Virus record (IMG/VR): IMGVR_UViG_3300030102_006934 | Coordinates: 186,001 to 250,000 of that record | Direction: 5' to 3' (one strand) | DNA: 64,000 nucleotides | Translations under genes and position numbers: made by a program | Notes under the pieces: generated by a model | The model's input: only the letters and a program-made list of their open reading frames with translations | Told to the model about the DNA's origin: nothing | Databases searched by the model: none | Shown here: positions 37,378 through 54,100 of the stretch, piece after piece | Layout of the letters: every line of letters begins with the position of its first letter | Numbering within the stretch: the stretch's first letter is position 1

Positions 37378-37866
37378 ATGGCAGATTTATTGATGAGAAT
37401 GCCTGTTCCTTACGAACCAAAGAAAAAGAACAGGTTTATATTTAGATTCCCTACACCTCTTGGAATTCAAGAGTGGTTTGTAGCTTCTGGTTCTAGACCA
37501 GCAATTACTATAGAAGAGGTGCCTATTCAATTCTTAAACACCGAAACATACGTAGCGGGTAGATTTAATTGGGAGAGTATTGATGTAACATTTCGTGACC
37601 CTATTGGTCCTTCAGCGGCTCAGGCTCTTATGGAATGGGTTCGTTTACACGCGGAATCGGTAACAGGTCGTATGGGTTATGCAGCGGGTTATAAGAAAGA
37701 TATTGAGTTAGAATTATTAGACCCTACAGGTGTTGTCATTGAAAAATGGATACTACAAGGAACTATGTTAACAAACGTTAACTTTAACGATTTAGATTAT
37801 GGTTCATCTGATATTGCTGACATCAACGCTACTTTAAGATTTGATAGAGCTATACACGTATTCTAA
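37378..37866 (+). CDS. Tail tube protein (gp19-like)
   Basis: YEPKKKNRF, YVAGRFNW, YKKDIELELLDPTGVVIEKWILQG, LDY. Confidence 0.92.
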   Translation: MADLLMRMPVPYEPKKKNRFIFRFPTPLGIQEWFVASGSRPAITIEEVPIQFLNTETYVAGRFNWESIDVTFRDPIGPSAAQALMEWVRLHAESVTGRMGYAAGYKKDIELELLDPTGVVIEKWILQGTMLTNVNFNDLDYGSSDIADINATLRFDRAIHVF

Positions 37867-37882
37867 TAAAAAAATTAATTAT

Positions 37883-37911
37883 AAAAACCCTCTTTACTGG
37901 AGGGTTTTTTT
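37883..37911. terminator. Bidirectional terminator
   Basis: AAAAACCCTC-N7-GAGGGTTTTTTT. Confidence 0.85.
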
Positions 37912-38676
37912 ATGCTTTGAATCGAACCAAAAAGTTCTACCATTTCTATCTTTAATTTTTTCCTTTTTAGTATAACACCTCATCCATTCTCTAAATGTTA
38001 ATTTATCATCAAAGTATGGATTCATCCATTGTGATAGTTGTCCACCTCCTAGTTGGTAAGCTTCTTCAACCACAGTATCACACAAAGATAACATTTTTTT
38101 ATTTTTAATAGCTTCTCTAGAGGATACAAATGGGTCTTGGTCAGCTCTATCTAAAATCTCAGCTCTAAGGTAGTTACCCATTCCGTTGAAGTATTTTTGA
38201 TCTAACATTAATTCGTAAATTGGTTTGTCGAATATTTTTTTATGAGAATTATTATGTAAGTTGTCTACAAAATCATCCCATTCAGTTAACATACAAGGAC
38301 CTCTATTATCAGACCATCCATTACTTTCCTTCCATCTAGAAAATCTTCTAACATCATACATACATAATTTACCACCACTTAATGATTCAAAAATTATATG
38401 TGAGTGTTTAGGTACATTACCCTTCTCAATAAAAACCCAATTACCAGACATACCCATACCCATTAAAAACCTTTTCTCTTTTTTAGTTTTTACATCTTCA
38501 ATGACCAACATTAACTCTTTACCTCTACTAAAAGAATAAATTTTAAACTCTTTATAAGGTACACTTATATTTGGGTTTTTATTCTTTTCAGATTTTTTAA
38601 CGTCAACATAAGTTTCGTCTTTACTAACATAATTAATGTATTCAGACATAATTTTGACTTCTGCTAATTCAGGCAT
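37894..38676 (-). CDS. nei: Fpg/Nei DNA glycosylase, NEIL1-like (zincless finger)
   Basis: MPELAEV (Pro2-Glu3), RGKEL, GMSG, DVRRF, H2TH LDQKYFNGMGNYLRAEIL, DRNGRTFWF; no Cys4 zinc finger. Confidence 0.9.
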   Translation of the reverse strand: MPELAEVKIMSEYINYVSKDETYVDVKKSEKNKNPNISVPYKEFKIYSFSRGKELMLVIEDVKTKKEKRFLMGMGMSGNWVFIEKGNVPKHSHIIFESLSGGKLCMYDVRRFSRWKESNGWSDNRGPCMLTEWDDFVDNLHNNSHKKIFDKPIYELMLDQKYFNGMGNYLRAEILDRADQDPFVSSREAIKNKKMLSLCDTVVEEAYQLGGGQLSQWMNPYFDDKLTFREWMRCYTKKEKIKDRNGRTFWFDSKHKKTLQ

Positions 38677-38678
38677 TA

Positions 38679-38870
38679 TTATCTATTTTTATTGATTATT
38701 TTTTCTATTTTTTCAACCGTAGAGTCATCCAACTTCATTCTACCACCAAATTCCATTTTTATGATTAGTAGCTCGTTACTTATTGATGATATATCCGAGG
38801 TGTTCTTCCTTAATTTTGTTAACTCTCCTTTTAATTCTAATAAAAGGTCTAATCCTTTATTGATTGTCAT
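38679..38870 (-). CDS. Small hypothetical protein
   Basis: Sits between the peptidase and nei genes with tight spacing. Confidence 0.55.
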   Translation of the reverse strand: MTINKGLDLLLELKGELTKLRKNTSDISSISNELLIIKMEFGGRMKLDDSTVEKIEKIINKNR

Positions 38871-38879
38871 CTTTTTGAT

Positions 38880-39719
38880 TTAATTTTCGTCACCACCCTC
38901 CTCTAAAATAGTAGAGTAGTTAGGTTTATTTGTTAATAATTCACTTTTGGAACCTTCATAAAAGTTTTCACCGAGAATACTATGAAGTTTAATACCTAGA
39001 TTAAAAGCGTTTTGTACTTCTTCAACAACAACATATTCATCATCTGTATGATATCTATGGTAACCAGCCGCTAAATTAAGACAAGCGAAGTTGAATTTTT
39101 CCATTAAAGGCCAAATGTCCGTATATGGATGTCTTTCCCAACTAGTAACACCATGTTCTAATATTGGTTCGGAAACTTTTTCAGCGAAATCACTATTTTC
39201 AGAGAATAACCTTTTACCCATTAAAGTTAAACTCATTGAATTACCTTTGGGTGAATCATATTGAATAGCGTAACCCACATCTTTAAAAAAGTTAGGGTCT
39301 GCTTGATTTGAACCTATACAACCTATTTCTTCGGAAACAAAAAAGGCGACTTTAACATTATCTAATTTGTCTAACATCTCCAAACAAAGGTAAACACCAC
39401 ATTTATCATCCCCACCAATTCCTGAAGGTCTCATTGTTGTAGAATCAATACCAGTTAATATGGTCTTACCTTCTTCTTCTAGTTGAATGACTTTAAGATT
39501 TTTATTCACTCTATGAACTGTATCTGTGTGCGACACAAAACAAGGAAAATTATCAGTTTTACCTTTAGTAACATATATATTACCTATTTCATCTATATGA
39601 TGTTTGTAATTCTTTTGTGTTAGAACTTCTTTCAGATAATCTATCATCAATCCTTCATCTCTAGAGAATGTAGGTACCGATAATACTTCTTTCAATCTGT
39701 TTAAATTAGGGTCTTTCAT
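38880..39719 (-). CDS. M28/M20/M42-clan metallopeptidase
   Basis: SHTDTVH, GGDDKCG, SEEIG, YHTDDE. Confidence 0.85.
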   Translation of the reverse strand: MKDPNLNRLKEVLSVPTFSRDEGLMIDYLKEVLTQKNYKHHIDEIGNIYVTKGKTDNFPCFVSHTDTVHRVNKNLKVIQLEEEGKTILTGIDSTTMRPSGIGGDDKCGVYLCLEMLDKLDNVKVAFFVSEEIGCIGSNQADPNFFKDVGYAIQYDSPKGNSMSLTLMGKRLFSENSDFAEKVSEPILEHGVTSWERHPYTDIWPLMEKFNFACLNLAAGYHRYHTDDEYVVVEEVQNAFNLGIKLHSILGENFYEGSKSELLTNKPNYSTILEEGGDEN

Positions 39720-39941: not shown

Positions 39942-40715
39942 ATGGACGTACAAAATCAAACAATAGAAAACAAAAGTGTACAAGTAGAAGTACCTTATGA
40001 TATAATACCGTTACCTTCAAAAGGTTTATTATATCCAGGTAGAAAACCTAATTTAGAGGTTGAATACTTAACCGCTATGGATGAAAACATTCTAACATCT
40101 CCTAATCTTTTACAGTCAGGTAAATTTATAGAGGTTTTAATGAAAAGAAAAATAAGAAAAGGCCAAGTATCTCACGATGATTTGTTACTCGGTGACAGGA
40201 ATTCTATCTTAATATGGTTAAGAGCTACTGGTTATGGTGAAAAATATCCAGTAACAATACAAACACCAGAAGGACTAGAAATAGAAACAGAGGTAGATTT
40301 AACAAAATTGAAACAAAAAGAATTAGGAGCAGAACCAGACGATAATGGATTATTCGATTTTACCTTACCCCAATCTAAGAAAAGAATTAAATTTAGGTTA
40401 TTAACGGTAAAAGATGAAGATGAATTAACAAAAAGAGAAAAAGCTCAAGAAAAAAGAAAGGCTGAATTTTCAGACAGCTTAACACACAAGTTAGGTACAC
40501 ATATCATGAGTATTGATGGTCGTAATGATAAAGAATGGATACATAATTTTGTTAGAGTTATGCCGGCTAGAGATTCATTAGCTTTAAGAAGATATATAAA
40601 TGATATCGAACCAGGTGTCGATTTATCTATCACAGTGGAGGGTCCTGGAGGTGACCCTATAGACACATTTCTTGTCCTTGGACCAGACTTTCTTTGGCCT
40701 GAGTTCGGAGTATAA
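39942..40715 (+). CDS. Baseplate hub assembly / tail assembly chaperone (gp26-like)
   Basis: IPLPSKGLLY, LTAMDENIL, LLLGDR, LRATGYG, FTLP, FRLLT, FLWP terminus. Confidence 0.8.
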   Translation: MDVQNQTIENKSVQVEVPYDIIPLPSKGLLYPGRKPNLEVEYLTAMDENILTSPNLLQSGKFIEVLMKRKIRKGQVSHDDLLLGDRNSILIWLRATGYGEKYPVTIQTPEGLEIETEVDLTKLKQKELGAEPDDNGLFDFTLPQSKKRIKFRLLTVKDEDELTKREKAQEKRKAEFSDSLTHKLGTHIMSIDGRNDKEWIHNFVRVMPARDSLALRRYINDIEPGVDLSITVEGPGGDPIDTFLVLGPDFLWPEFGV

Positions 40716-40920
40716 ACCTTATTTAACCAATGAAATATTTATATGTACCAAACATATAGGATTTACTAGAGCAGACATAATGTCAATGCCTATTTGGGAA
40801 AGAAGGAATTATATAACTCAACTTTTAGAAGAAAAAGAAGAAGAAAAAAAACAAATGGATAGAGTTAATAGTACATCATCTAGTAGTGGTGGAAAAAGAA
40901 CTAGGAGAGTGACTACTTAA
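40696..40920 (+). CDS. +1-frame extension of the tail chaperone (gpT-like), probably made as a frameshift fusion
   Basis: Overlapping +1 ORF without a good start; MPIWERR-type motif; slippery TTT CTT TGG at 40689-40697. Confidence 0.6.
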   Translation, partial: GLSSEYKPYLTNEIFICTKHIGFTRADIMSMPIWERRNYITQLLEEKEEEKKQMDRVNSTSSSSGGKRTRRVTT

Positions 40921-40934
40921 GTCACTCTTTTTTT
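40906..40934 (+). terminator. Intrinsic terminator
   Basis: AGAGTGACT-ACTTA-AGTCACTCT-TTTTTT. Confidence 0.8.
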
Positions 40935-40965
40935 CTTTCTCGTATATTTATAATAAAAAGAAAGT

Positions 40966-42573
40966 ATGGACTTAAAATTAGGGAGTGTACTGAATTCAAG
41001 TGTTGATGATTTATTAATAAAAGAATTCTTCACTATAGGTAAGGGTGAAATATTCAAAGACTATATACCGATACAATTTTTTAATGAACCAGTAAAGACA
41101 AGAATGGTCCTTGACGGTCTTGAGACAGAAGGAGAAATGACTTTAACTGATAGTGATTACAGTTCACACGAACAAGGTGAAGGTAAACCTTTAGAAACAT
41201 ATACTTTTAATTACATACCAATCAGAACTTTAGACGGTAAAATAAAAAAGGGTGATAGGTTTATAATTAAAATTAAGGGTAGTGATATGTACAACCCAAA
41301 AATTAAAACTCCAGCACTTGAAATGGATAGAGGTTATACTACATTAACCGATAAGGTAGGTAATGGTAGTGATGGTACAACCGAAAAAGAACAAGAAGGA
41401 AGTGGTGATGAACAAAATGTATCTACAGACGAAGAAACTTTTAAAGATTTAGACTCTAGTTTAAAAAATATAAAATCACAAACACCAAATCTAAAATCAC
41501 TAGATATAAGTGGTAGGGGTGATAAAGACCCAAGTTTTAGAAGAAATGTGGTTTTAAATTTCGCTAATTCTAGTAAAACAAATATTAAAATACAAGGAAA
41601 GTCTTTATTCGACATGTTAAAAAAACTTTCTGACGATAAAATAGTTGAGAAAGATGAGGTAAAATGGACAGACGAGGTATCAAAATTTTTCAATGATTTA
41701 CTAAAACTATTTAGTGAACTACATAAATGTTGTAAAGAAAATAAATTATATATAAGAATAAAAAAATTCTTAAAAGAATTATATGACGCTTTAAAAAATG
41801 TCAGAGGTAAATACAAAGATGAAAAACAAAGAGACTTAGCTTATACTAAAATAATTATGTCAATGAGCGATATTATAAATTACATATCTAAAGCTAGTAA
41901 TTTCAGTAATCAAGGACAAAAAACAGAAAATATAATAAAAGAAGAACCTAAAGTTACAAAAATAACTTTCAAAGACTTTAATGTGAATACACCAAAAACA
42001 GCTACTGATGCAAAGGAAAAAATTTTTGATGACGATAATTTAAGTCAAAGAGAAATGGAAAGATTAGCTTTTAAACTGTATGGTAAAGATGCTGGTAAGT
42101 TTTTCCCTAAATTGTCTTTAAAATTTAAAGATATACCAAGTTTATTTGGTCTTGTTGGTTCTGGTGGTATAGAAACGAGACAGGACAAGTTAGCTGATAA
42201 ATATGGTATATATAACCTAGACCGTATGGTTGGTGATAGTAGCTCTAAGAGTATGGATAACACACCCCAATACAAATTACGATTCGATAAAGATGTAAAA
42301 ATCGCAGACGCTAAAAGTGGGATTAAATTAGAAATTAAAAAGGACGAAGAAAAAATATTTAATTATGATCAATCTAATAAAGTTTTAATACACAAGACCA
42401 GTAGTAAAAGTCAAAATGTTAGTCAAATTTTTATAGAAATAGATGAAGAACCAAAAAAAGGTAAATCTTATGATGAAAAAATAACTAAAATAATACCTAT
42501 AAGAGGTGGGGTACTAGAGAATAACCCAAACTACAAAGTTAAATTTACGGTAGTAGACGGCCCAAATAAATAA
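40966..42573 (+). CDS. Hypothetical late protein
   Basis: Long Lys-rich ORF with TATTTATA upstream; no recognised domain. Confidence 0.7.
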   Translation: MDLKLGSVLNSSVDDLLIKEFFTIGKGEIFKDYIPIQFFNEPVKTRMVLDGLETEGEMTLTDSDYSSHEQGEGKPLETYTFNYIPIRTLDGKIKKGDRFIIKIKGSDMYNPKIKTPALEMDRGYTTLTDKVGNGSDGTTEKEQEGSGDEQNVSTDEETFKDLDSSLKNIKSQTPNLKSLDISGRGDKDPSFRRNVVLNFANSSKTNIKIQGKSLFDMLKKLSDDKIVEKDEVKWTDEVSKFFNDLLKLFSELHKCCKENKLYIRIKKFLKELYDALKNVRGKYKDEKQRDLAYTKIIMSMSDIINYISKASNFSNQGQKTENIIKEEPKVTKITFKDFNVNTPKTATDAKEKIFDDDNLSQREMERLAFKLYGKDAGKFFPKLSLKFKDIPSLFGLVGSGGIETRQDKLADKYGIYNLDRMVGDSSSKSMDNTPQYKLRFDKDVKIADAKSGIKLEIKKDEEKIFNYDQSNKVLIHKTSSKSQNVSQIFIEIDEEPKKGKSYDEKITKIIPIRGGVLENNPNYKVKFTVVDGPNK

Positions 42574-42593: not shown

Positions 42594-45449
42594 TTGGCAT
42601 TTAATCCTAAAGATCTTAACGCTTATAAAGAGTTTCTAAACACACAACAGAAAATTTCGGAGACAATTAGTAAAGGAACTAAATCTTTTGCTGTTGGAGC
42701 TAAAGATGCCATAAAAGCTTCTAGAGATTTAAATAAAATAAAAAAAGATTTAAATAGGTTAGAAAAAGAAGAGAAGGAACTTTTAGAAAGGAAAAAAGAC
42801 CTTTCAGGAGAAGAATTAAGAATAGCTGAAGAAAAACTAAAAGTAATTCAGGCAGAAAAGAAAGCCACTGAAGATATACTCAAAAAACAAGAAGCCTTAT
42901 CTAAAGCTCTATCTAGTCAAGTAACTAGTGTTAAAAATTTAGCAGTAGCCTTAGGTAGAGATACATACAAAGCTTTAAGTAAAGTAACTGTAAAAGCTAA
43001 AGAACTAGGTAAAGAATTCTCAGAGTATGATGATGCTATGAGAAGAACCGCTGTCAACATCGGTGTTGTTGGTAAACAGTTTAATCAAATGCGTAAAGAA
43101 GCTTATAAAGCTTCCTTGATGACACAAAGAATAGGTGTTAGTGCAAAAGAACTCGTACAAAATTATGGTGAATATGTAGATGAGATAGGTAGATTAGTAC
43201 CCTTATCTAGAAGTGCTGGTAAAGCATTAGCTTACATGGGACAAGGTACAGCTTTAGGAGCTCAAGGAGCTGCTCAAATGGCAGCTAGTTTAGATAACTT
43301 TGGTATGTCTATTGAAACTAGTGCTAAATTCGTGGAAGACATAGTTAATATGTCTGAAAAGATGGGTGTTAATTCTGGTAAAACATTAAAAATGTTAAAT
43401 CAGAATTTATCTAAAGCGGCTACTATGAACTTTAATGGTGGTGTGAACGCAATGGCTAAAATGGCAGCAACCGCCGTCAAGTTAAAAGGGGACATGGCTA
43501 GTACACTAAGTTTCGCAGAAAGAATGTACCAACCCGAAGAAGCTATTAAAACCGCTGCTAGTTTCCAAATGTTAGGTGGAGCTATTGCTGGTATTGGTGA
43601 TGGTTTACAACTAATGTCTAAATCAATGTTTGACCCAGAAGGTCTTCAAAAAGATATAGCGAAAGCTGCTGCTTCTTTATTCAAAATGGAAGACGGACAA
43701 GCTAAAATATCTGGTGTAGTGGCATCGAATAAGTTAAGGGTAATGGCTGAACAACTTAACATGTCCAAAGAGGAACTAGCCGCTCAAGGTCAAATATATA
43801 AAAAACAAGAACAAATAGGTAAATCACTTTCTCGTAGAATGGACCCTGAAACTAGAGAGTTTATTAAAACAATCGCGACTTATGATGAAAAATCTGGTGG
43901 GTTTGTAGTTAAAGCGGATGGTAAAACTATACAAGTTGCTAATCTACAACAGTCTACAGCTCAGATGTTAATGTCTGAGAACAAAACCTTAGAAAAAAGA
44001 GCAGAAGATGCACAAGGGTTTATGACTAGGATTAAAAATCTAATGGAGTCTTTAAAGAACTTAGGTTTCGCTTTCTTTGCTGGTTTAGATAAAACTATAG
44101 GGCCTATGTTAGACCGTTTAACGGGTAGAGGTGAAGGTACTTTAACTAGTTTCGCTGAGAAGTTCGAGAGTTGGGGTGAACAATTAGGTACTTGGCTTAG
44201 TACTGGATTGGTACCATTAATGGAAACTGGAATACCTATGGTTCAAAAATCCGCTAAGTTTGTTGTTTCTACAATACAACAAGGAATTAATTTTATAAAA
44301 TCAATTTATAAATCAGCTGAAGAGTTAATGGTTAAACATGTAATTCCTTTCGTAAAGGATGTCGCTGAATATGTAAAACAATTTTGGGCAGATAATGGTT
44401 CCTCCATAAAAGAACTTGGTGCAGCGATGGCAAATGCTACTACAGCAATGTTACCAGTATTAGTTAAGGTGGCTAAATTTTTAGGACCTGGTGGTATATT
44501 TGCTATATTATTAATGAAAAAATTCCCAGGACTTATGGGTGGTTTATTCCGAGGGTTAGCTAATAGTACCAAAGGTGTATTTAACAGATTATTTGGAATG
44601 CCTGGATCTAGTCCCGCTAGACCTAGTTATGTAGTACCCATGGGTGGTGGAGCTATGGGCGGTGGAGCTATGGGTGGTAGAGGTGGACCAATGATGGGAC
44701 CAATGGGAGCAACGGGAGCTAGAGGAGCCGCCACAACAGGAAAATTCGCTTCGGGACCTAGAGCTGGACAAAGGTATTATCAAGTAGGTGGACAATTTGC
44801 TTCTGCGGCACAATACAAAGCCGCTGGGGGGTTGTCGGCTGCGGGTAGACTTGGTAACATGATGGGTGCTGCTTCACCCTACATGATGTTAGGTGGTTTA
44901 GCTTTAGGAATTGGTAGACAATTCTTGGATAATACTAATTCTGCTGCTGGAAAAGCGATGGGAATGGGTGCTGGTATTCTAGGTGGTGCTGGTACTGGAG
45001 CAATGTTAGGTAGTATGATAGGACCAGTAGGTACCTTAGTTGGAGGTATTGTAGGTGGTTTAATTGGTGGTGTTAATTCTTATATGAATGAATACGTTAC
45101 AAAAGAAGTACCTAAAATGTCTAACGACAAAGCCATTTCAAAACTAGATAATATGACCTTCGCGTCAAATAAAACTGGTTACATGGCAGATGGACAAATT
45201 GCTGGTGGTGGTTCTGTAATTTTTTCCCCTGCAGGTACTTATTTTACAGATAAAAAGGATTACGTCACCGCATCAACAAACAACCCTCTAAATGGAAATG
45301 GCGGAACCACTAACGGTAATATCACAGTCAACGGTACAATAAAATTAGATACAGGAAACTCGTCAATGCAAGTTGACTTCGAGAAAATGAGTGCTTCTGA
45401 AAAACAACAATGGGTACAAATAGTTGTGGCGGGAATGAAAAATATGTAA
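42594..45449 (+). CDS. Tape measure protein
   Basis: Helical and Ala/Gly/Met-rich, with hydrophobic and glycine-zipper segments; downstream of tube and chaperone; TTG start. Confidence 0.8.
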   Translation: MAFNPKDLNAYKEFLNTQQKISETISKGTKSFAVGAKDAIKASRDLNKIKKDLNRLEKEEKELLERKKDLSGEELRIAEEKLKVIQAEKKATEDILKKQEALSKALSSQVTSVKNLAVALGRDTYKALSKVTVKAKELGKEFSEYDDAMRRTAVNIGVVGKQFNQMRKEAYKASLMTQRIGVSAKELVQNYGEYVDEIGRLVPLSRSAGKALAYMGQGTALGAQGAAQMAASLDNFGMSIETSAKFVEDIVNMSEKMGVNSGKTLKMLNQNLSKAATMNFNGGVNAMAKMAATAVKLKGDMASTLSFAERMYQPEEAIKTAASFQMLGGAIAGIGDGLQLMSKSMFDPEGLQKDIAKAAASLFKMEDGQAKISGVVASNKLRVMAEQLNMSKEELAAQGQIYKKQEQIGKSLSRRMDPETREFIKTIATYDEKSGGFVVKADGKTIQVANLQQSTAQMLMSENKTLEKRAEDAQGFMTRIKNLMESLKNLGFAFFAGLDKTIGPMLDRLTGRGEGTLTSFAEKFESWGEQLGTWLSTGLVPLMETGIPMVQKSAKFVVSTIQQGINFIKSIYKSAEELMVKHVIPFVKDVAEYVKQFWADNGSSIKELGAAMANATTAMLPVLVKVAKFLGPGGIFAILLMKKFPGLMGGLFRGLANSTKGVFNRLFGMPGSSPARPSYVVPMGGGAMGGGAMGGRGGPMMGPMGATGARGAATTGKFASGPRAGQRYYQVGGQFASAAQYKAAGGLSAAGRLGNMMGAASPYMMLGGLALGIGRQFLDNTNSAAGKAMGMGAGILGGAGTGAMLGSMIGPVGTLVGGIVGGLIGGVNSYMNEYVTKEVPKMSNDKAISKLDNMTFASNKTGYMADGQIAGGGSVIFSPAGTYFTDKKDYVTASTNNPLNGNGGTTNGNITVNGTIKLDTGNSSMQVDFEKMSASEKQQWVQIVVAGMKNM

Positions 45450-45482: not shown

Positions 45483-48400
45483 ATGCCTTCTATAAATCCC
45501 GAAAATTACAACATAAACAGTTTCAATAGTCAAACATTAGGACCAATTACAGTCCAAGACTTTAGGGATTATGTGTTAAAACACAACCTCCCTGGTTTAG
45601 ACCCAGTTTTAGCTAGTAACGGAATAGATAATTACGGCTTAAATATTTACGCACCTTTATTATTTAACCCATCAGATACGGTGAACGATTTACCTAATTT
45701 ATCTGAAGTAGCTTTTATACCTAGCCCAATAAACGATAATACCTCACCTAGACCAGACAATAAAAAAAGAAATTTATTCACCAACGAAGAACCTTTCATT
45801 GGTTCTGAAACAGAGGAAGAGATTTTTTCTGTAACAACAAGGTCTCTGGAAGATCCAGGTTCTATAGATTCTTGGGTAGAGGGAGCTGGTTTTTCAACAG
45901 ATGTATTTTCGGTTAGAAATTTTAACAACTTAACTAACAATGAGTACGGACCAGAATACGTAGAAACTTATAATGACCCTGACCAACCATTAGAATCTAC
46001 AGGTTATAAACAATATCCATCAGACGCTGGTGGAGATGTAATAGGACCAGTAATAGCTAGAAGTTTAGGTTTTAGTCCTGAGAATTTTATTAATTTCCCA
46101 TCACCACTACAAGATACAGCTAAGGAAAGAAGAATTGAAGAATTAACAAATAGAGTTAAATTAAACTTTGTTGATGATACTGTTGGTAGATTAAATTTAG
46201 ACCCTTTAGGTTTATTAGCTGGACAAAGCATTTTTCTACCAGATTATACAATAACTAAAAGAAAAGGTATACTTGGTAAAGCGGCTCAATTCGCAGCTAG
46301 TTTAGGTGGTTTCAATTGGCCTAGAAGTCCACTAAAAGGTGGCAAAAATCCTGACTTAGGGAGTAACGCTTTCCAAGCAGACTTATTAGACTTCACTGGT
46401 AAAGCACAAAGGAAAATTTTATATAAAAATGTTTACTCTAGTAAGTACACACCAGAATTACTAACAAAAGGTTATGATTTAGAAAATGCGGGAGCCGATA
46501 CTTTAAGTGCTGGTGGAGCCGAATCTTTAGGTGAGGGAAAGAAAACACCTAACAACTATTTAAAATTAAATAAAAAATTAAATAAAGACGAATCTACTAG
46601 AGAACGTAGAGTAGGTAATTGGTTAAGGGATTTAACAACTAAAGGAGATCAAACATTACAACCAGATAGTGATAGACTAACCACACCATCGGACCCATTT
46701 GTAACCATGGGTGTAACAGGACAATATCCATCAATAGATAATCTTGATCCCGAATCTACATTTGTTGAATTAGATTTTATAACACCACCATCTTATCAAT
46801 ATGGGGATGAAAACTACTACCCAAACAAAACCACATTAAAACCATCACAAGAGGATAGTGATAGTGGTCTAAATAGTTTTACTCACACAACACCTGGTAC
46901 AAAAAACTTATTCTATTGGCAGAATAGGGACAGAAGTGTCGCTAAAAGAGGTTTATTAGATTTTACTCAAAAAATGATTAATAATACAGACGCGAATGGA
47001 TATAGAGGTGGAGCTAAATTTATTGGTCGTTTTGATAGTGATAGTAATCTAAAGGATGTACAAGTTGATGTGGGTGATGGAGATGTAAGAAACGTACCTA
47101 GGTCGAAAGATGTCTCCAAAGGTAACTTACTTCGAGGAGCAGATGGTGACCATTATTGTCGTTCATGGACAACTAGAAATCCATACCAAAACCATTATGA
47201 TTTAATTAGAAGAAGTAGGTTATACAGAGCGGGTGGTGGTTCGGATACAGGACCATTCCCAGGGCCATACCAAAGTACATTAGAAGATAATGGACATGTT
47301 AAGATAGCACCTTATTCGTCAGATGACTTTGATATTGATGCCGATGTAACAAATGCTAGAGGAATATTTAACTCTGGTAATGATGTTAAAAGATATATGT
47401 TCTCCATAGAAAATTTAGCTTGGGCTGATGCAACAGAAAAAATAGCATTAGAAACTTGTGAAATAGGCCCAAATGGTGGTAGAATAATGTGGTTCCCACC
47501 TTATGATATTAACTTTACAGATAATACAACGGCTAATTGGGACTCAACCGTATTCTTGGGTAGAGCTGAACCAGTCTACACATATAATCATACAGAAAGA
47601 AAAGGTACTTTAAGTTGGTCTATAATTACAGATCACCCATCCGTTTTAAATAAACTAAAAAGTCCATTAGAGGGTAAAATATTAGAATTTTTTGCTGGAT
47701 GTGGTGTAGATGTTACTAAATTTTATGAAGAAATAAAAGAAGAAATTTTAAGGATAGAAATACCAGTAATCGAAGATGAGGATGAAGATGATGATGAAGA
47801 TGAAGTTATTACACCAACTCCAGTAATAAAAAAAGAACCACCCGTTAAAAAGTTAAGTTTTTATTTTAGGAATGCTGGACCAGGAGATGGTAGTGCTAAA
47901 GGTAGACCTGGTGTGGGTAGAACTATCGAGAAAGAAATTGCCGTAAATTATGATACGGGTAAATTTAGTAGTGATGGTGTTGGAAAGAATCAAATATCTA
48001 AAACTAAAACAGGTGATTATTTAATGTTGAATGAAAATCGTTGGTTTACAACGGAAGGTGATGAGAGTAAGGGTATAGATGCTTTAATAGACTTTTTAGC
48101 AACAGAAGACGGTCAAGAATGGTCTATTAAATTAGAGGGTTTCTGTAGTGCCGCTTCAACCGACACATATAATCAAATGTTATCCATAGATAGGGTACAA
48201 CGTGTTTATGAGTATATGGCTAAAGCCGTAAAAGAAAGAGGTGAAACTGGTGGTTCTGGTTATACATATATACCTGAAAACTTTAAAAAGGCACATTTTG
48301 GTTATAAGTGTACTGATGGTACCGATGATAAAAGAACTTCTTATCGAAAACAAAAAGATGCTGAACTAGGTATGGATTCTAGGAAATGTGCAGAATGTTT

Positions 48401-50789
48401 TTCGGTTGGTAGAAAATACGGTTACTACCCTTACGTGGGGTCAATCAAAGATATTGGTACGCCTAAATCTGAAAATATAACTGAGGAAGAACTATCTAAA
48501 TTAGGGAGATGGATTACAGTTGCTAAAAGTGAGGATTACGCGGCCCAAGTTGATGAAGATGGGTTGCCTTTGGAAAGTGAACAATTAGACGGTACAGTAA
48601 TATCCGTGGGTACTCTATCTAATAAAGCTAAAGAAGATAGAAAAGTAGTGGTAACTTTATTTAGAAACCATGAGTATGTTGCACAAAATACAAAAGTTGA
48701 AGATGACCCATCTTTATCTTCTGAATTAGAATTAACTAGATTACCAATTCAACCCTTACCAGAAAGAATAGGACCAGAACCACCAGGAACACCCAAAACC
48801 ATCTTGATACCAGACGCGATAGATTTTCCTTCCGATTCCATCACCTTCTCACCAAACGGTGACTTGTTACAAGATGGATTACCAGTCATGGAATACCGTG
48901 AAGAACCTAAAAAAACTAGAAAACAAAGAAGGTTAGAAAAAAAGAAAAATAAAAACCAAGAGTACGAAAAAGAAGTTGTTACTTCGGCTGGTACAAAAAC
49001 TATAATGACAAAATACGGTGAAATAATAGAACTACCAACTACTGAAGCTTTATTGAAACAAAAAGCTGTAGAAGACCAGATTCGAACAACTGAAGAGATA
49101 GCTAGAAGAGCGGCAGATGGTGGTGTCTCTGAAAACGTAAACGATGATGAAATTAGTGAAAACCCTATTATCACTGAAAAAGTTGTTAAGAGAGTAGTTC
49201 AAAAATTATTTAGGGAGTGTGAATACTTTGAAAAAATAAAAGTATCAGATCCTTTTTTATATGAAACTATAGAAGAAAAAGTTAAATTTTTTCATCCAGC
49301 TTTTCATTCTATCACACCAGAGGGGTTAAATAGTAGGTTAACTTTCTTACAACAATGTATGAGACAAGGGCCAAGTTTAAGAGACTCAAACAATATTACA
49401 CAAAACATGGCTTTTGGTAAACCACCCGTTTTAGTACTAAGAATAGGTGATTTTTATTACACTAAAATAATACCAGATTCATTAAACATAAATTACGAAC
49501 CACTACAATGGGATATGAACCCTGAAGGTGTTGGTGTACAACCTATGATTGCCAAAGTAGATTTAAACTTTAGTATGGTGGGGGGCTCTAGTTTAGACGG
49601 ACCAATAAATAGATTACAAAACGCAGTATCTTTTAACTTTTTCGCCAATACTTCTGTTTATAACCCTAGAAGATATTATGATGGTAATATAGCTAATAGA
49701 AGTGCTTTCAGTACGATGGAAGAAAAACTAGAGGAAGATGCTAATAAAATAGAGTTGAATAATCAAAATATAGGATTTGGGGCTTTCAAAACACAAGACC
49801 AAGCCTCCTTAGAATTCTATGGTAAAGATACGGGTGGTCAACAAAGTAATGTTAAAACAGACGATAAAGATAAAGGTGATAAAAATGAAGATGAAGAAAT
49901 TAAAGCAACATTCTATTTTAATGATTTAGGGATATCACCTAAAGGAGCTTCAATACCAGAAGAACAAAAAATAAAAACTAATATTTTAATAGACCCTAAT
50001 CAACCAAATAAACCAATAGATGAAGCGTTATTAATGGGTACCACTGGTGAGGTTGAAGTTGAGGGTGTAGACCCAACAACTAGTGTTTTTTACGCTGGTG
50101 GATTTATGGGGACTGAATCTGACCAAGAAGAAATATCTAATATGTATCCAGGTTCAACCACACCACTAATAGAGTTAAGGTCAGATTTGTTTTATAGAGT
50201 TCAGTACAAAGAAGTGGTGGAACTACCATTGGGTGAAGAAGTTTTAACAGGTAATATAAACCCACAAGTTAATATTAATGAATCCAATATAAAAGCAAAA
50301 TACCCAGATGGGTCTGGTGGTATTTTATTAGATACAATAACATTCGGTATAACTAACGAGGGTAGAAAACAAGGTTGGTATGTATCCCCAAGAGTTGAGC
50401 TTAAAATGACTTATCCAGATGGTGAAGTTAAAACTCTACAAGATAAGGCTTATATTGTATCCACCACATCATCAATCGAAAGTTTAGGTAAACCATATAC
50501 TGATAATACGGTTATCACTACAGACGTAGCAATGGTATTAACTTTTGAAGTTCAAAGATACTACTTAGATTGGTTTGATTTAGATGGTTTTGAAAATGGT
50601 AATTACAAATTAGACATTACTTGGATATATGCTAGAGAAGTTACAGAAGAAACACAAGGAATAGACCCTACTAAAAACGTTGGTGACTTAGTGATTAAGG
50701 AGTATACAGAAAGTTTAGTATATGACTTGTATAGTGAAGATTATGTTGACACAACCCTAATAGGACCACAACCAAACCCAACACCTTAA
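45483..50789 (+). CDS. Baseplate/tube-initiator-like protein with inserted OmpA-like peptidoglycan-binding domain
   Basis: Tube-like halves FPPYDINFTD..ANWDS..LGRAEPVYTY and KPPVLVLRIGD..SLNINYE flank IKLEGFCS...YNQMLSIDR...DRKV. Confidence 0.6.
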   Translation: MPSINPENYNINSFNSQTLGPITVQDFRDYVLKHNLPGLDPVLASNGIDNYGLNIYAPLLFNPSDTVNDLPNLSEVAFIPSPINDNTSPRPDNKKRNLFTNEEPFIGSETEEEIFSVTTRSLEDPGSIDSWVEGAGFSTDVFSVRNFNNLTNNEYGPEYVETYNDPDQPLESTGYKQYPSDAGGDVIGPVIARSLGFSPENFINFPSPLQDTAKERRIEELTNRVKLNFVDDTVGRLNLDPLGLLAGQSIFLPDYTITKRKGILGKAAQFAASLGGFNWPRSPLKGGKNPDLGSNAFQADLLDFTGKAQRKILYKNVYSSKYTPELLTKGYDLENAGADTLSAGGAESLGEGKKTPNNYLKLNKKLNKDESTRERRVGNWLRDLTTKGDQTLQPDSDRLTTPSDPFVTMGVTGQYPSIDNLDPESTFVELDFITPPSYQYGDENYYPNKTTLKPSQEDSDSGLNSFTHTTPGTKNLFYWQNRDRSVAKRGLLDFTQKMINNTDANGYRGGAKFIGRFDSDSNLKDVQVDVGDGDVRNVPRSKDVSKGNLLRGADGDHYCRSWTTRNPYQNHYDLIRRSRLYRAGGGSDTGPFPGPYQSTLEDNGHVKIAPYSSDDFDIDADVTNARGIFNSGNDVKRYMFSIENLAWADATEKIALETCEIGPNGGRIMWFPPYDINFTDNTTANWDSTVFLGRAEPVYTYNHTERKGTLSWSIITDHPSVLNKLKSPLEGKILEFFAGCGVDVTKFYEEIKEEILRIEIPVIEDEDEDDDEDEVITPTPVIKKEPPVKKLSFYFRNAGPGDGSAKGRPGVGRTIEKEIAVNYDTGKFSSDGVGKNQISKTKTGDYLMLNENRWFTTEGDESKGIDALIDFLATEDGQEWSIKLEGFCSAASTDTYNQMLSIDRVQRVYEYMAKAVKERGETGGSGYTYIPENFKKAHFGYKCTDGTDDKRTSYRKQKDAELGMDSRKCAECFSVGRKYGYYPYVGSIKDIGTPKSENITEEELSKLGRWITVAKSEDYAAQVDEDGLPLESEQLDGTVISVGTLSNKAKEDRKVVVTLFRNHEYVAQNTKVEDDPSLSSELELTRLPIQPLPERIGPEPPGTPKTILIPDAIDFPSDSITFSPNGDLLQDGLPVMEYREEPKKTRKQRRLEKKKNKNQEYEKEVVTSAGTKTIMTKYGEIIELPTTEALLKQKAVEDQIRTTEEIARRAADGGVSENVNDDEISENPIITEKVVKRVVQKLFRECEYFEKIKVSDPFLYETIEEKVKFFHPAFHSITPEGLNSRLTFLQQCMRQGPSLRDSNNITQNMAFGKPPVLVLRIGDFYYTKIIPDSLNINYEPLQWDMNPEGVGVQPMIAKVDLNFSMVGGSSLDGPINRLQNAVSFNFFANTSVYNPRRYYDGNIANRSAFSTMEEKLEEDANKIELNNQNIGFGAFKTQDQASLEFYGKDTGGQQSNVKTDDKDKGDKNEDEEIKATFYFNDLGISPKGASIPEEQKIKTNILIDPNQPNKPIDEALLMGTTGEVEVEGVDPTTSVFYAGGFMGTESDQEEISNMYPGSTTPLIELRSDLFYRVQYKEVVELPLGEEVLTGNINPQVNINESNIKAKYPDGSGGILLDTITFGITNEGRKQGWYVSPRVELKMTYPDGEVKTLQDKAYIVSTTSSIESLGKPYTDNTVITTDVAMVLTFEVQRYYLDWFDLDGFENGNYKLDITWIYAREVTEETQGIDPTKNVGDLVIKEYTESLVYDLYSEDYVDTTLIGPQPNPTP

Positions 50790-50844: not shown

Positions 50845-51168
50845 ATGGGAACTAGTTATTTTGATAGGTACGGTAATTTTAAAAATAAGGATAAATTTAG
50901 TTTTATACCCTTTATAAAGTTATCAAAAAAACCAACAGATTTAAATATAAAATGGAAAGAAACCAAAAGACTAGATAAAGTTTCAAATGACGTTTATGGG
51001 TCACCCTTTTATGGGTGGTTAATATTACTAGCCAACCCAAAGTATGGTGGGTTGGAGTTTGATATTCCAGATGGTGTTTCACTAAGGATACCATTCCCAT
51101 TAATGGAAAGTTTACAAGACTACCAAAAAAAAGTAGATAATTATATTTTACAAAATGGCAGAGAGTAG
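50845..51168 (+). CDS. Baseplate wedge protein (gp53/LysM-like)
   Basis: RLDKVSNDVYGSPFYGWLILLANP...LRIP. Confidence 0.8.
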   Translation: MGTSYFDRYGNFKNKDKFSFIPFIKLSKKPTDLNIKWKETKRLDKVSNDVYGSPFYGWLILLANPKYGGLEFDIPDGVSLRIPFPLMESLQDYQKKVDNYILQNGRE

Positions 51169-54100
51169 TACACAGTTTGGTTGTAATGACTTAGCTAAAA
51201 ATGTTTCTGGTTGTGAGGAGAATGGTAACATAAGACTAATCAACCCAAACGCACAAATAGATGAGGAAGGTGTTAAAAATGAAGACCTAGTCATGTATGC
51301 GACATTAAGAGCTAGAGTAAAAAACAAAAGTTTATTATTAGACAAAGACGATGAGTTATGGAATGAATTGACTTTTATAAAAGCCAAGTCAAACGCTCCA
51401 GGCCAAGCCGCTGAAGGTTCTGCAAACGCTACACCAGAAAATACTAGTTTTTTAACCACTAATTGGACCGACATAGGTTCATCAGATATGTTATTTGAAA
51501 AAGATCATGAAACTTTTGGTATAACTAATATAAATGTGGATATACAGGCAGACTTTATACCAAAAATAAGTATAGATTTCGTAGATTTAAGAGGAGCCAC
51601 TTTATTTGAACAAGGATCTTGTTCACCTTATGCTAGTTTCTTTCACCAACCGTACCCAGTATTTGAGTTAGTACTTAAAGGTTATTATGGTAGTCCGATA
51701 AAATATCAGTTGATGGTCCAAGACTTTAAAACATCTTTTGATGCTAGTACTGGTAATTACGTTTCTAAAGCTGAAATGATAGGTTTTAACTACGCCTTCT
51801 TAGGTGATATTATGTTAGCTTACGTTTTAGCTGTACCCTATATAGAAGGGTCAGATGAGATACTAACATCAATATACCAAGACTATTTAAATTATTATAA
51901 AGAAAGAGGTTTTAATGAGGGTAGGAATAAATTCGAACCCTTAAGTGCTGATGATAACTCACCATTAACACTTTATAATTACGTAAGAAAATTACAAGAA
52001 CTAGAAGGCCAAGGTAATTCAGACAAAGGACCTATTGCAGAAATACAAAGTTCATCTGAGTTATTTACCATAGAAAACCTAGATAAGTTCCAAGAGATAT
52101 TAAATGATATTGATGAATTTATAGATAAAGATTTTGATGAGTCTTGGAAAAAAAAGGGTGGTAAGAATGTAAATAATTTATATTACTATGGTGATGGTTC
52201 AGTTGGTGATACTGGTGTAAACACTGATAATTTATTGGACGTTTATAGTAATTTTTTTGGTTCGGTTGGTAAGATAACCACCTCAATAGCTGTTTATAAT
52301 GATTTAGTCGGTGATTCTGGTTCTTCATCTTTAACACCAATAATATCAAACCCAAAAGTAGAAAAAACATCTACTTACTTGTTAAGTTTAGATTTAGAAG
52401 GTCTAAAGAATGAAATGAATAATAAGTTGGATGAAATTTCTTTGGACTTAAAGACTAAAAGAAAAGAATTTATAGATTTAGCTAATGCTAAAATAAAGTC
52501 TTCCGTAGGTTTCGTACCCACTATAAGAAGTTTTTTTACTACTTTAATCGCTAACACAGAATTATTTTTAGAACTACTTAGGACCACGTCTTACGATGCA
52601 GAACAATATCATCAAAAAAACAAAGATTCTGATAAAATAAGGTTTAAAAATGAGGAGGACGTTCCAGTATCGGATATTGTTTATGCTTGGCCTACATATA
52701 CAGAAATAAGACAAAGTGGGACTAGAGATGAAACGGAAGTAGAAGTTTACCCAGGAACTAACCCAAAGTTCCAAAATTGGCCTGAAGTAATATTCGTAGA
52801 AAACCTATTAAAAGCTCTCACTGAAATGAACAGAAAGTTACAAGAAGGTGATGGAGAGGAAGTTAATCCAGAAGTAGATCCATATGATGGTATACCAGGT
52901 AGAGATAACTATTTCCCAGTCAATGCCATGGAAACACCTCTAGGTGCTAGAGACGCTAATAATAGTTATTATAACCTAAACTCAAAAGATGCTGTCATAA
53001 GGTCTTTGGGTGAAAGATTTATACTATACAGTAATGTTACAGGTGTTAACTCTAATTTTTTAAATACATCGGTGATAGCTTCAGCTAAAAATAGTTTTAA
53101 CGAAACACTATTATTAAGGGGTAAATATGCTATACAACCCGTAGAATTTAACTTAAATAAATCCTTTAATCCCTCTAAAAAATATCAGATATTTCCAGGT
53201 ATAGAAAAATTAAATAACGGCGTTTTAACACCTTATTTTAGTGCTGGACATTATTTTAAACCTAAAAAGTTTGGTGGTGAAGATTTAAACATTAATACAA
53301 ATCTAACTTATAGCCAAAACTATAAAAAAATAGGTGGTATCAAAGGTTACCCATATATAGATGATAGAAAATTCTTCGGAAACTACGTAAGTCCTATGGG
53401 TTTACCTTTATCTAGAGAAGCTAGTGAAACTGAAGATACTTATAACAATGATTGGAATAATATTGGTTATTTAATGGAAGGTGATGGTGAGGTTAAAAGT
53501 AGTAATAACCTAACTTACGAAGAATTAACACCATCATCTGAATTACGTACACATGTAATTAGTTTCAAAATACCTAAAATAACCCAAACAGATTTTAGAA
53601 CAAAATTTGAAAAAAGTTTTAAATATGAGGGTAATTTAGGTAATAAAAAAAGTTTTACTAACGATGAAAATGTGGTTGTTCTAGAACCACTTTATTACAC
53701 TAAAAAAATGGTAATAATATTTGTTGATAAGAATACCACAAAACCAGGTTACAGTATTGAAAATCACATATCACAGGTACCAAAAAATGTTAGAGACAAA
53801 GCGTGGATTATATTATGTACTAATTATGTTGGTTACGATTATAAGGGTAAAAATAAATCTGCTAGAGCAGAGTTTTTAAGTAATTATCTTGAGACTGACA
53901 ATTATCTACAACTAGTAAACATAGTTGTAGAAATACTTTATAAAGCAAAAGGAAACCCAACCCGAAAGCTGACTTCAGAAGAAATAGACTTATCATCAGG
54001 TATAGATTCATTTTTTGATATAACCTTATTAGGGTATGGATCTGGTTCTCTTGAAGCCTTTTTATATGGAGACACCCAAGAAACTTTAGACAATGTAGAA

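Follow-up and report, generated by a model that had tools for sequence, protein, structure and literature searches.

The locus considered here raises the question of whether two overlapping open reading frames (ORFs) of a large phage are two genes or a single gene that is read in two frames. The ORFs lie on the plus strand at positions 39942-40920 of the analysed stretch of DNA, hereafter the window, which comprises 64,000 nucleotides (nt), bases 186001-250000 of the 380-kb IMG/VR phage record IMGVR_UViG_3300030102_006934. The phage comes from marine metagenomes, the G+C content of the window is 32%, and a nucleotide search with the region produced no match among cultured phages. The comparison described below indicates that ORF1 and the overlapping ORF in the +1 frame (ORF2) very probably constitute one gene that is recoded by a +1 programmed frameshift and encodes a tail or hub assembly chaperone of the T4 gp26/gp51 family. 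The features on which this assignment turns are the following ones.

39942-40715, plus strand: ORF1, 257 amino acids (aa), the predicted short form of the chaperone, as judged from PF12322, phrog_150 and an AlphaFold2 model
40663-40715, plus strand: overlap window, in which the +1 frame is open while ORF1 is still being read, from the ORF map; the same span shrinks to 29-32 nt in loci L052, L073 and L058
40689-40698, plus strand: proposed +1 shift site TTT CTT TGG C, from the conservation of the aligned motif, with two candidate P-site codons
40696-40920, plus strand: +1-frame part, 74 aa and a stop codon, with a gp51 C-terminal-like domain suggested by a match to phrog_634
40903-40941, plus strand: terminator-like hairpin and T-run over the end of ORF2, from a consensus scan only

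The 3' end of ORF1 reads GAC TTT CTT TGG CCT GAG TTC GGA GTA TAA, with the stop codon at 40713-40715, and the encoded protein ends in ...GPDFLWPEFGV. The +1 frame is bounded upstream by TAG at 40660-40662 and is open from 40663 to the TAA codon at 40918-40920; its translation from 40663 is THFLSLDQTFFGLSSEYK...MSMPIWERR..., and the part downstream of the proposed site reads GLSSEYK...MPIWERRNYITQLLEE..., followed by a basic tail. In this frame, TTG codons are present at 40672 and 40678 and the earliest ATG is at 40780. The end of ORF1, the +1 overlap and the position of this ATG are the same, on re-reading of the sequence, as in a preliminary description of the locus. That description also placed a terminator after ORF2 and none after ORF1, in agreement with the consensus scan of the window, which detected a hairpin of 12 pairs (40903-40931), followed by a T-run and spanning the ORF2 stop codon, and no terminator-like hairpin between the ORF1 stop and ORF2. 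Because both frames are open only at 40663-40715, a shift must fall within this interval.

The junction is also found without indels in an independent metagenome contig (L002), whose ORF1 is 94% identical, and in DNA and RNA-library contigs from other samples; therefore, the overlap is not an assembly error. The metatranscriptome-library contigs, which represent related strains, run across the junction at 40386-40881, 40627-40822 and 40536-40701 without indels and show zero differences over 40665-40721. As rare variants are masked in such contigs and DNA may be present in RNA libraries, these data argue only against a fixed RNA-level change and fit a single transcript that covers both ORFs. 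L002 and the RNA-library contigs differ from the window by A>T at 40661 and by C>T at 40664, with the result that the +1-frame TAG is gone and the overlap window extends to 95 nt; therefore, the upstream edge of the overlap window is not under selection.

Under the proposed mechanism, most ribosomes would end at 40713-40715 and produce the short form of 257 aa, which would correspond to gp26 or lambda gpG, and a minority would slip forward by one base on TTT CTT T (40689-40695) and read the +1 frame to 40920, yielding a long form of 251 + 74 = 325 aa, the equivalent of gp51 or lambda gpGT. A fusion of about 325 aa made by a +1 shift at 40689-40697 had been put forward in the preliminary description; the predicted fusion has this length, and the comparison with related loci supports the shift. 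The P-site codon could be either TTT 40689 or CTT 40692. By the first route, tRNA-Phe would re-pair from UUU to UUC (40689-40691), giving the junction ...GPDF-FGLSSEYK...; by the second, tRNA-Leu would move from CUU (40692-40694) to UUU, with UGG in the A site, giving the junction ...GPDFL-GLSSEYK.... After the slip, base 40695 would be skipped and reading would resume at GGC 40696; the length of the long form would be the same by either slip, and the expected junction peptides of the fusion are ...GPDFLGLSSEYK or ...GPDFFGLSSEYK. It is plausible that the slip is helped by a slowly decoded next codon, which would be CUU in the first route or UGG, and CGN in relatives. CTT accounts for 9% of the Leu codons in the window ORFs, where CGN codons are very rare, and all three Leu codons among the last 17 codons of ORF1 are CTT. 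A -2 slip was considered as well and rejected from the sequence only, as GAC TTT CTT gives no -2 re-pairing. By analogy with lambda G/GT and from T4 genetics, both forms would act transiently on the tape measure and the hub, with the extra domain recruiting a further partner.

The site had also been described as prfB-type, and this likeness holds in part. The window sequence CUU UGG C differs by one base from the Escherichia coli prfB site CUU UGA C, and a P-site slip on CUU_U (CTT TGG C, 40692-40698) is possible, with the same re-pairing of CUU to UUU and the same incorporation of Leu followed by the +1 codon. Unlike prfB, which has a stop codon in the A site and a Shine-Dalgarno (SD)-like element three bases upstream, the window has the sense codon UGG and no SD-like element; furthermore, most of the relatives carry UUU at the site, compared with CUU in prfB.

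The junction in related viral loci

A profile scan of viral contigs detected more than 578 relatives of ORF1, and the best 80 of these, with 34-94% identity, were kept. The frame count covers the 84 loci in which the ORF1 stop lies on the locus; removal of duplicates and inclusion of three cultured phages gave 64 distinct junctions, which form 22 clusters at 60% identity. The ORF2 profile matches the +1 frame, overlapping the end of ORF1, in 84 of the 84 related loci, a count that overstates the number of independent observations, the sampled loci being related. In the alignment of the +1-frame proteins, the conserved part starts with FF(G/V/S)L.S.Y and extends to MP..ERR.Y(I/L); upstream of FF, this frame shows no conservation between clades.

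An in-frame TTT_Y or CTT_T is present at the aligned place in 61 of the 64 distinct junctions. The commonest forms of the site are TTT TTT TGG CCT (16 junctions), TTT TTT CGT CCT (12) and the form of the window, TTT CTT TGG CCT (9); the codon that follows the T-run is TGG in 33 junctions and CGN in 21, and CTT occupies the site in only 12 of the 64, with TTT in the others. The ORF1 stop shifts by 2-9 codons between clades while the position of the T-run is fixed. The earliest ORF1 stops are found 2-4 codons past the T-run, the stretch common to all junctions is about six codons, and the shortest overlap windows (29-32 nt, in L052, L073 and L058) start right at the T-run. Among the cluster representatives, the frame-0 third positions upstream of the T-run contain 0.06-0.58 bits of information, with one column at 1.06, compared with 1.73 bits at both codons of the T-run and raised values onward to the ORF1 stop; the information content is highest at the T-run in all three codon positions. 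Judging from these alignments, the jump at third positions is the signature of a second reading frame that starts at the T-run and not further upstream. The frame-0 third positions upstream of the T-run are free; therefore, the +1 frame is not coding there. Such a jump would not be expected if ORF2 had its start further upstream. Conservation of the site and of both frames in homologues, which had been proposed as a check on the frameshift, is thus observed, synonymous positions included.

The +1 arrangement extends to cultured phages, namely, Flavobacterium phage Immuto, with AGC TTT CTT TGG CCT GAC and the site form of the window, Bacillus phage SP-15 (TTT TTT CAC), Streptococcus phage GXN1 (TTC TTT CGT CCC) and Microcystis phage Mel-JY01. 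The gene order in Immuto, SP-15 and locus L093 is sheath, tube, chaperone pair and tape measure.

Some variation of the site is associated with particular clades. In one large clade (L054, L059, L062, L069, L075, L076 and L083), the site has the form GGG GTG GAG/GAA TTT TTT CGN, with a purine-rich, SD-like run that stands at the prfB spacing, with a single codon between it and the second TTT; this run is absent in the clade of the window. The clade of L006 (3820-3890), L079 and L085 has GTT or ATT followed by TTC at the aligned place and, about 7 codons upstream, TTT CTT followed by AGG, AGA or GGA; CUU AGG is the +1 site of yeast Ty1. Given these three junctions, the shift site may differ between clades, and this one may shift instead at the upstream TTT CTT. 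The respective sequence of the window, TTT CTT at 40668-40673 (the upstream TFL site), is rejected as a universal shift site, being absent in many clades and lying outside the 29-32-nt windows of L052, L058 and L073; for the clade of L006, L079 and L085, it is a possible one.

Outside the window, at the very start of the 380-kb record, there is another, diverged ORF1/ORF2 pair, truncated by the end of the contig (G000:C1:1-499, locus L104). In this pair, ORF1 ends in ...PRFFWPNSRI, the DNA reads AGG TTT TTT TGG CCT AAC and ORF2 is in the +1 frame. The phage may carry two such modules, or else the record may join two related phages.

Protein families, fold and the long forms of other phages

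ORF1 matches the Pfam family PF12322 (T4_baseplate, the gp26 family) with an E-value of 5.4e-7 and 29.9 bits against a cut-off of 24.5, with only residues 77-127 aligned, and phrog_150 ('baseplate hub') with an E-value of 3.5e-9. ORF2 matches positions 72-118 of the profile phrog_634 ('baseplate hub assembly catalyst', gp51) with an E-value of 7e-4; this profile is matched by 13 of the 41 ORF2 homologues, with the best E-value of 1.2e-8. The match of ORF2 to Pfam DUF6760 (PF20546; E-value 2e-4, 21.4-21.9 bits) is below the gathering cut-off of 27, and 8 of the 41 homologues match this family at E-values of 0.01 or less. Direct BLASTP comparison of ORF2 with T4 gp51 gave no significant similarity; a profile of the fused proteins produced a weak alignment with gp51 that is colinear through the junction (E-value 0.076 in a two-sequence search). 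As judged by these profiles, ORF1 and ORF2 are the gp26-like and gp51-like parts of a tail or hub assembly chaperone. The preliminary description had taken the pair for a tail assembly chaperone, with which both the family profiles and the neighboring tube and tape-measure-like genes agree.

Neither ORF1 nor ORF2 matched a solved structure in a sequence search. ORF1 was modelled with AlphaFold2 from 45 sequences (pLDDT 90), and a Foldseek search of the PDB with this model also retrieved nothing. In an exhaustive structural alignment of the model with 48,161 chains (VIA-align), the first three ranks were occupied by 3fgx (Z-score 6.1, model residues 14-107), 3klu (Z-score 5.3, residues 134-224) and 2ob9 (Z-score 4.8, residues 135-225), with the chaperone-like structures 3pes and 3d8l placed lower in the same ranking. 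All three top-ranked structures are phage tail assembly chaperones (PMC9603447). The presence of chaperones in all top three ranks by chance appears very unlikely; therefore, the modelled ORF1 looks like a tandem of two tail-assembly-chaperone-like domains.

The T4 proteins provide the key control for the long form. As noted in the preliminary description, T4 genes 26 and 51 are separate; they are divergently transcribed, without a frameshift (L090:7803-9229; NC_000866 115802-117228). Residues 1-201 of gp51 (249 aa) match the full PF12322 profile with an E-value of 3.9e-52, and a C-terminal extension of about 45 aa lies beyond this match. Gp51 aligns with gp26 (208 aa) at an E-value of 2e-6; on the phrog_150 profile, gp26 reaches position 235 and gp51 reaches position 280, and positions 2-103 of phrog_634 match gp51 residues 147-246. 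By these sequence comparisons, gp26 and gp51 are paralogs, gp51 being a gp26-family domain with an ORF2-like extension fused in frame, and genes 26 and 51 look like a duplicated short/long chaperone pair similar to G/GT. The window resembles T4 in that ORF1 belongs to PF12322, ORF2 is similar to the C-terminal part of gp51 via phrog_634, and the logic is that of a short and a long protein; it differs in that the T4 proteins are products of separate divergent paralogs made without a frameshift and have low identity to the window proteins.

Long forms encoded in frame are also found elsewhere. A profile of 41 ORF2 products compared with 1.84 billion representative proteins yielded 1032 clusters, nearly all consisting of proteins of 40-120 aa with inconsistent N-termini, along with a few long proteins in which the domain is C-terminal. 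P0086, P0059 and P0104 carry the ORF2 domain in frame as their C-terminal part. In P0086 (331 aa), PF12322 covers residues 55-260 and is followed by ...NFFGLPDNYRENLMDEIF...; the DNA at the junction, AAT TTC TTC GGA, is not slippery and cannot be ascribed to an error in a homopolymer. Short and long genes stand in tandem in three metagenomic contigs, L091, L092 and L093. In L093, the sheath and tube genes are followed, in this order, by ORFs of 46 aa, 265 aa (the short gene), 289 aa (P0104), 349 aa and 859 aa. The short gene is orthologous to ORF1 (44% identity, E-value 3e-72), and P0104 is a paralog of this short gene (35% identity, E-value 5e-25) that contains the ORF2 domain in frame. The short gene ends in SLFWPQFKR, encoded by AGT TTG TTC TGG CCT, and its +1 frame is closed. 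The same tandem, a short gene followed by an in-frame long paralog, is found in L092; in L091, the upstream gene is represented only by a C-terminal fragment that ends, like a short form, in ...KLFWPNADI. L093 appears to be the best natural control: the amino-acid motif LFWP is kept, and the slippery bases are lost exactly where the frameshift would no longer be needed.

In sister lineages, the same gene pair occurs in a -1 arrangement. The T4-like cyanophage Syn9 (L100:1477-2390) has a single PF12322 gene, annotated 'gp26-like', that ends in ASFFG and is followed by a 47-aa 'gp51-like' ORF; the latter lies in the -1 frame, which is open upstream as far as TCT TTT TTC GGG, with the canonical heptamer T_TTT_TTC. 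The second ORF is likewise in the -1 frame in Agrobacterium phage Atu_ph07 (L095:1462-2528; CAT TTT TTC GCA, heptamer T_TTT_TTC) and in Xanthomonas phage XacN1 (L096:1501-2546; GCT TTT TTT ATT, heptamer T_TTT_TTT). These three phages share with the window the gene pair itself, the T-run at the same FF position and an ORF2 without a start before the conserved part; they differ from it in the frame of ORF2, which is -1, and in the canonical X_XXY_YYZ heptamer. In the window and in 84 of 84 close relatives, ORF2 is in the +1 frame, the -1 form being found only in the other lineages. A one-base deletion downstream of the U-run would turn the -1 arrangement into the +1 one. None of the three records annotates slippage, the second ORF being given as a separate 40-60-aa gene, and a search of viral contigs for relatives of the Atu_ph07 gene returned only the gene itself.

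The programmed frameshift of tail assembly chaperone genes, a conserved recoding event known from textbooks, is almost always -1 (-2 in Mu); lambda G/GT was reportedly described by Xu, Hendrix and Duda in 2004 as the conserved tail-assembly-chaperone frameshift of long-tailed phages. The window pair resembles lambda G/GT in its location between the tube and tape-measure genes, in the overlapping ORFs with one start that would yield a short and a C-terminally extended product, in the lack of a reliable start of the second ORF, in the conserved slippery site and perhaps in a chaperone-like fold, as suggested by the ORF1 model. Unlike lambda, the shift in the window would be +1 rather than -1, ORF1, roughly twice as large as gpG, is modelled with two chaperone-like domains, and a 535-aa ORF separates the pair from the tape measure; no sequence similarity of the window proteins to gpG or gpT was detected. 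According to the Atkins 2016 review, long-tailed phages 'except T4' have conserved the G-T frameshift, and the chaperone frameshift of the halovirus HSTV-2 is 'very likely +1' (PMC5009743). HSTV-2 (KC117376; L094:14982-15813) is a myovirus that shares with the window the order sheath, tube, chaperone pair and tape measure and a T part in the +1 frame, annotated as a two-piece join; its overlap contains an in-frame TTT CGC, the codon pair found in the junctions of many relatives. This is the sole annotated +1 chaperone join met in the analysis. The G part of HSTV-2 has no Pfam match, and its T part shows no significant similarity to ORF2 (E-value about 0.08 in a four-sequence search); homology is not established.

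Weighing of the explanations

Several observations weigh against a programmed +1 shift in the window. The core motif is non-specific, with 164 in-frame TTT_Y among the 20,118 codons of the window ORFs; therefore, a context signal must exist, and none that would single out the window site was found by RNA folding or by inspection for SD-like elements. The downstream RNA (40686-40800) folds no better than shuffled sequences (z -0.79), the upstream sequence GGACCAGACTTT contains no SD-like run, and UGG is not a rare codon in the window. The TTG codons at 40672 and 40678 could in principle start an independent protein of 80-82 aa. Furthermore, the junctions of L006, L079 and L085 lack the motif at the aligned place, and the relatedness of the sampled loci reduces the weight of the frame count. 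The likeness of ORF2 to the C-terminus of gp51 comes from PHROG and Pfam profile matches of moderate strength, and the structural Z-scores of the ORF1 model (4.8-6.1) are modest.

If ORF2 were a separate small gene with its own start, at one of the two TTG codons or at ATG 40780 (46 aa), the overlap would simply reflect compact packing of genes. All these start codons are indeed present in frame, proteins of this family, 40-120 aa in length, are reported by public gene callers in the hundreds, and DUF6760 (89 positions) exists as a stand-alone Pfam family, to which ORF2 is linked by the weak match described above. In addition, a host of the Bacteroidota type, if the phage has one, would need no Shine-Dalgarno sequence. 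However, the conserved FFxLxSxY...E(I/L) precedes the conserved Met, so that a start at 40780 would cut the domain, and upstream of the conserved E(I/L) column 42 of the 64 junctions contain no ATG and seven contain no ATG, GTG or TTG; gene callers place the starts of ORF2-family proteins at inconsistent positions. The separate-gene explanation also has to accommodate the free frame-0 third positions upstream of the T-run, the invariance of the ORF2 frame over 22 clusters, the loss of the T-run exactly where a long-form paralog is present (L093) and the fusion of the domain to a gp26-like body in T4 gp51 and P0086. Taken together, these observations make an independent gene improbable.

Explanations that retain the coupling of the two ORFs and dispense with ribosomal slippage account for less. 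Termination-reinitiation, whereby ORF1 would be finished at 40713-40715 and translation restarted close by on a non-canonical codon of the +1 frame, would be compatible with the fairly constant position of the ORF1 stop relative to the +1 frame, often within the conserved (E/D)-Y-(K/R) codons, and with the location of both ORFs in one transcript-like unit with the terminator after ORF2. However, there is no start-like codon by the window stop (the +1 codons are GAG TAT AAA CCT), the stop, unlike the T-run, varies in position by 2-9 codons among clades, and reinitiation leaves the nucleotide conservation of the T-run, the in-frame fusions and the -1 heptamers of the sister lineages unexplained; this route is considered highly improbable. 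The lowest probability is assigned to a frame change at the RNA level, in which RNA polymerase would slip on the T-run, dropping or adding bases. Six or seven consecutive T's are present in many relatives, and slippage is known to occur at homopolymer runs (Atkins 2016, PMC5009743); against this, the longest run in the window site TTTCTTT is three, the interrupted form occurs in 12 of the 64 junctions, and the RNA-library contigs show no indel at the site, with the reservation that contigs mask rare variants. Ribosomal +1 frameshifting within a single chaperone gene thus appears to be the best explanation of the pair.

Gene neighborhood and implications

The chaperone pair is flanked by the following genes.

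37378-37866, plus strand: tail tube gene (phrog_4542, E-value 1.1e-28)
40966-42573: 535-aa ORF with no assigned function, between ORF2 and the tape-measure-like gene
42594-45449, plus strand: tape-measure-like gene (phrog_167, E-value 3.1e-19)

Two minus-strand genes at 37894-39719, between the tail tube gene and the chaperone gene, break the usual adjacency of tube and chaperone. One of these is a 260-aa ORF of phrog_21295 (function unknown) and the other is a 279-aa peptidase-like ORF of phrog_4191, with weak matches to the M28 and M42 families of Pfam. On the 3' side of the tape-measure-like gene, there are very large ORFs at 45483-50789 (1768 aa) and 51155-63451 (4098 aa); the former has no PHROG match.

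In a wider context, the evidence leans, if only slightly, toward the view that phages with contractile tails have in the gp26/gp51 family their counterpart of lambda G/GT, with the short and long forms being an ancient obligatory pair and the long form made via a +1 slip, a -1 slip or duplication at one homologous FF/T-run site. The +1 slip would be employed by the phage of the window, a large marine and freshwater clade, Immuto, SP-15 and Mel-JY01, the -1 slip by Syn9, Atu_ph07 and XacN1, and duplication by T4 and the phages of L091-L093. If so, T4 genes 26 and 51, which have traditionally been named hub assembly 'chaperone' and 'catalyst', would be a duplicated G and GT, which provides a concrete hypothesis on their function and would explain why T4 seems to be the sole long-tailed phage without a chaperone frameshift. 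No published description of a gp26/gp51 frameshift was found in the literature searched, the coverage of which was incomplete.

Sense-codon +1 sites in bacteria are rare and poorly understood. If the present interpretation is correct, the long chaperone is made by a sense-codon +1 slip in hundreds of metagenomic myoviruses and in several cultured phages, and the family would provide a large natural series of bacterial sites of this kind, UUU_Y or CUU_U followed by UGG or CGN. Public annotations, in which the small ORFs of Immuto, SP-15 and Syn9 appear as 'hypothetical' or 'gp51-like' proteins of 36-47 aa, would need correction. Finally, a single site that switches between a +1 slip, a -1 slip and duplication would represent a natural experiment in the evolution of recoding signals.

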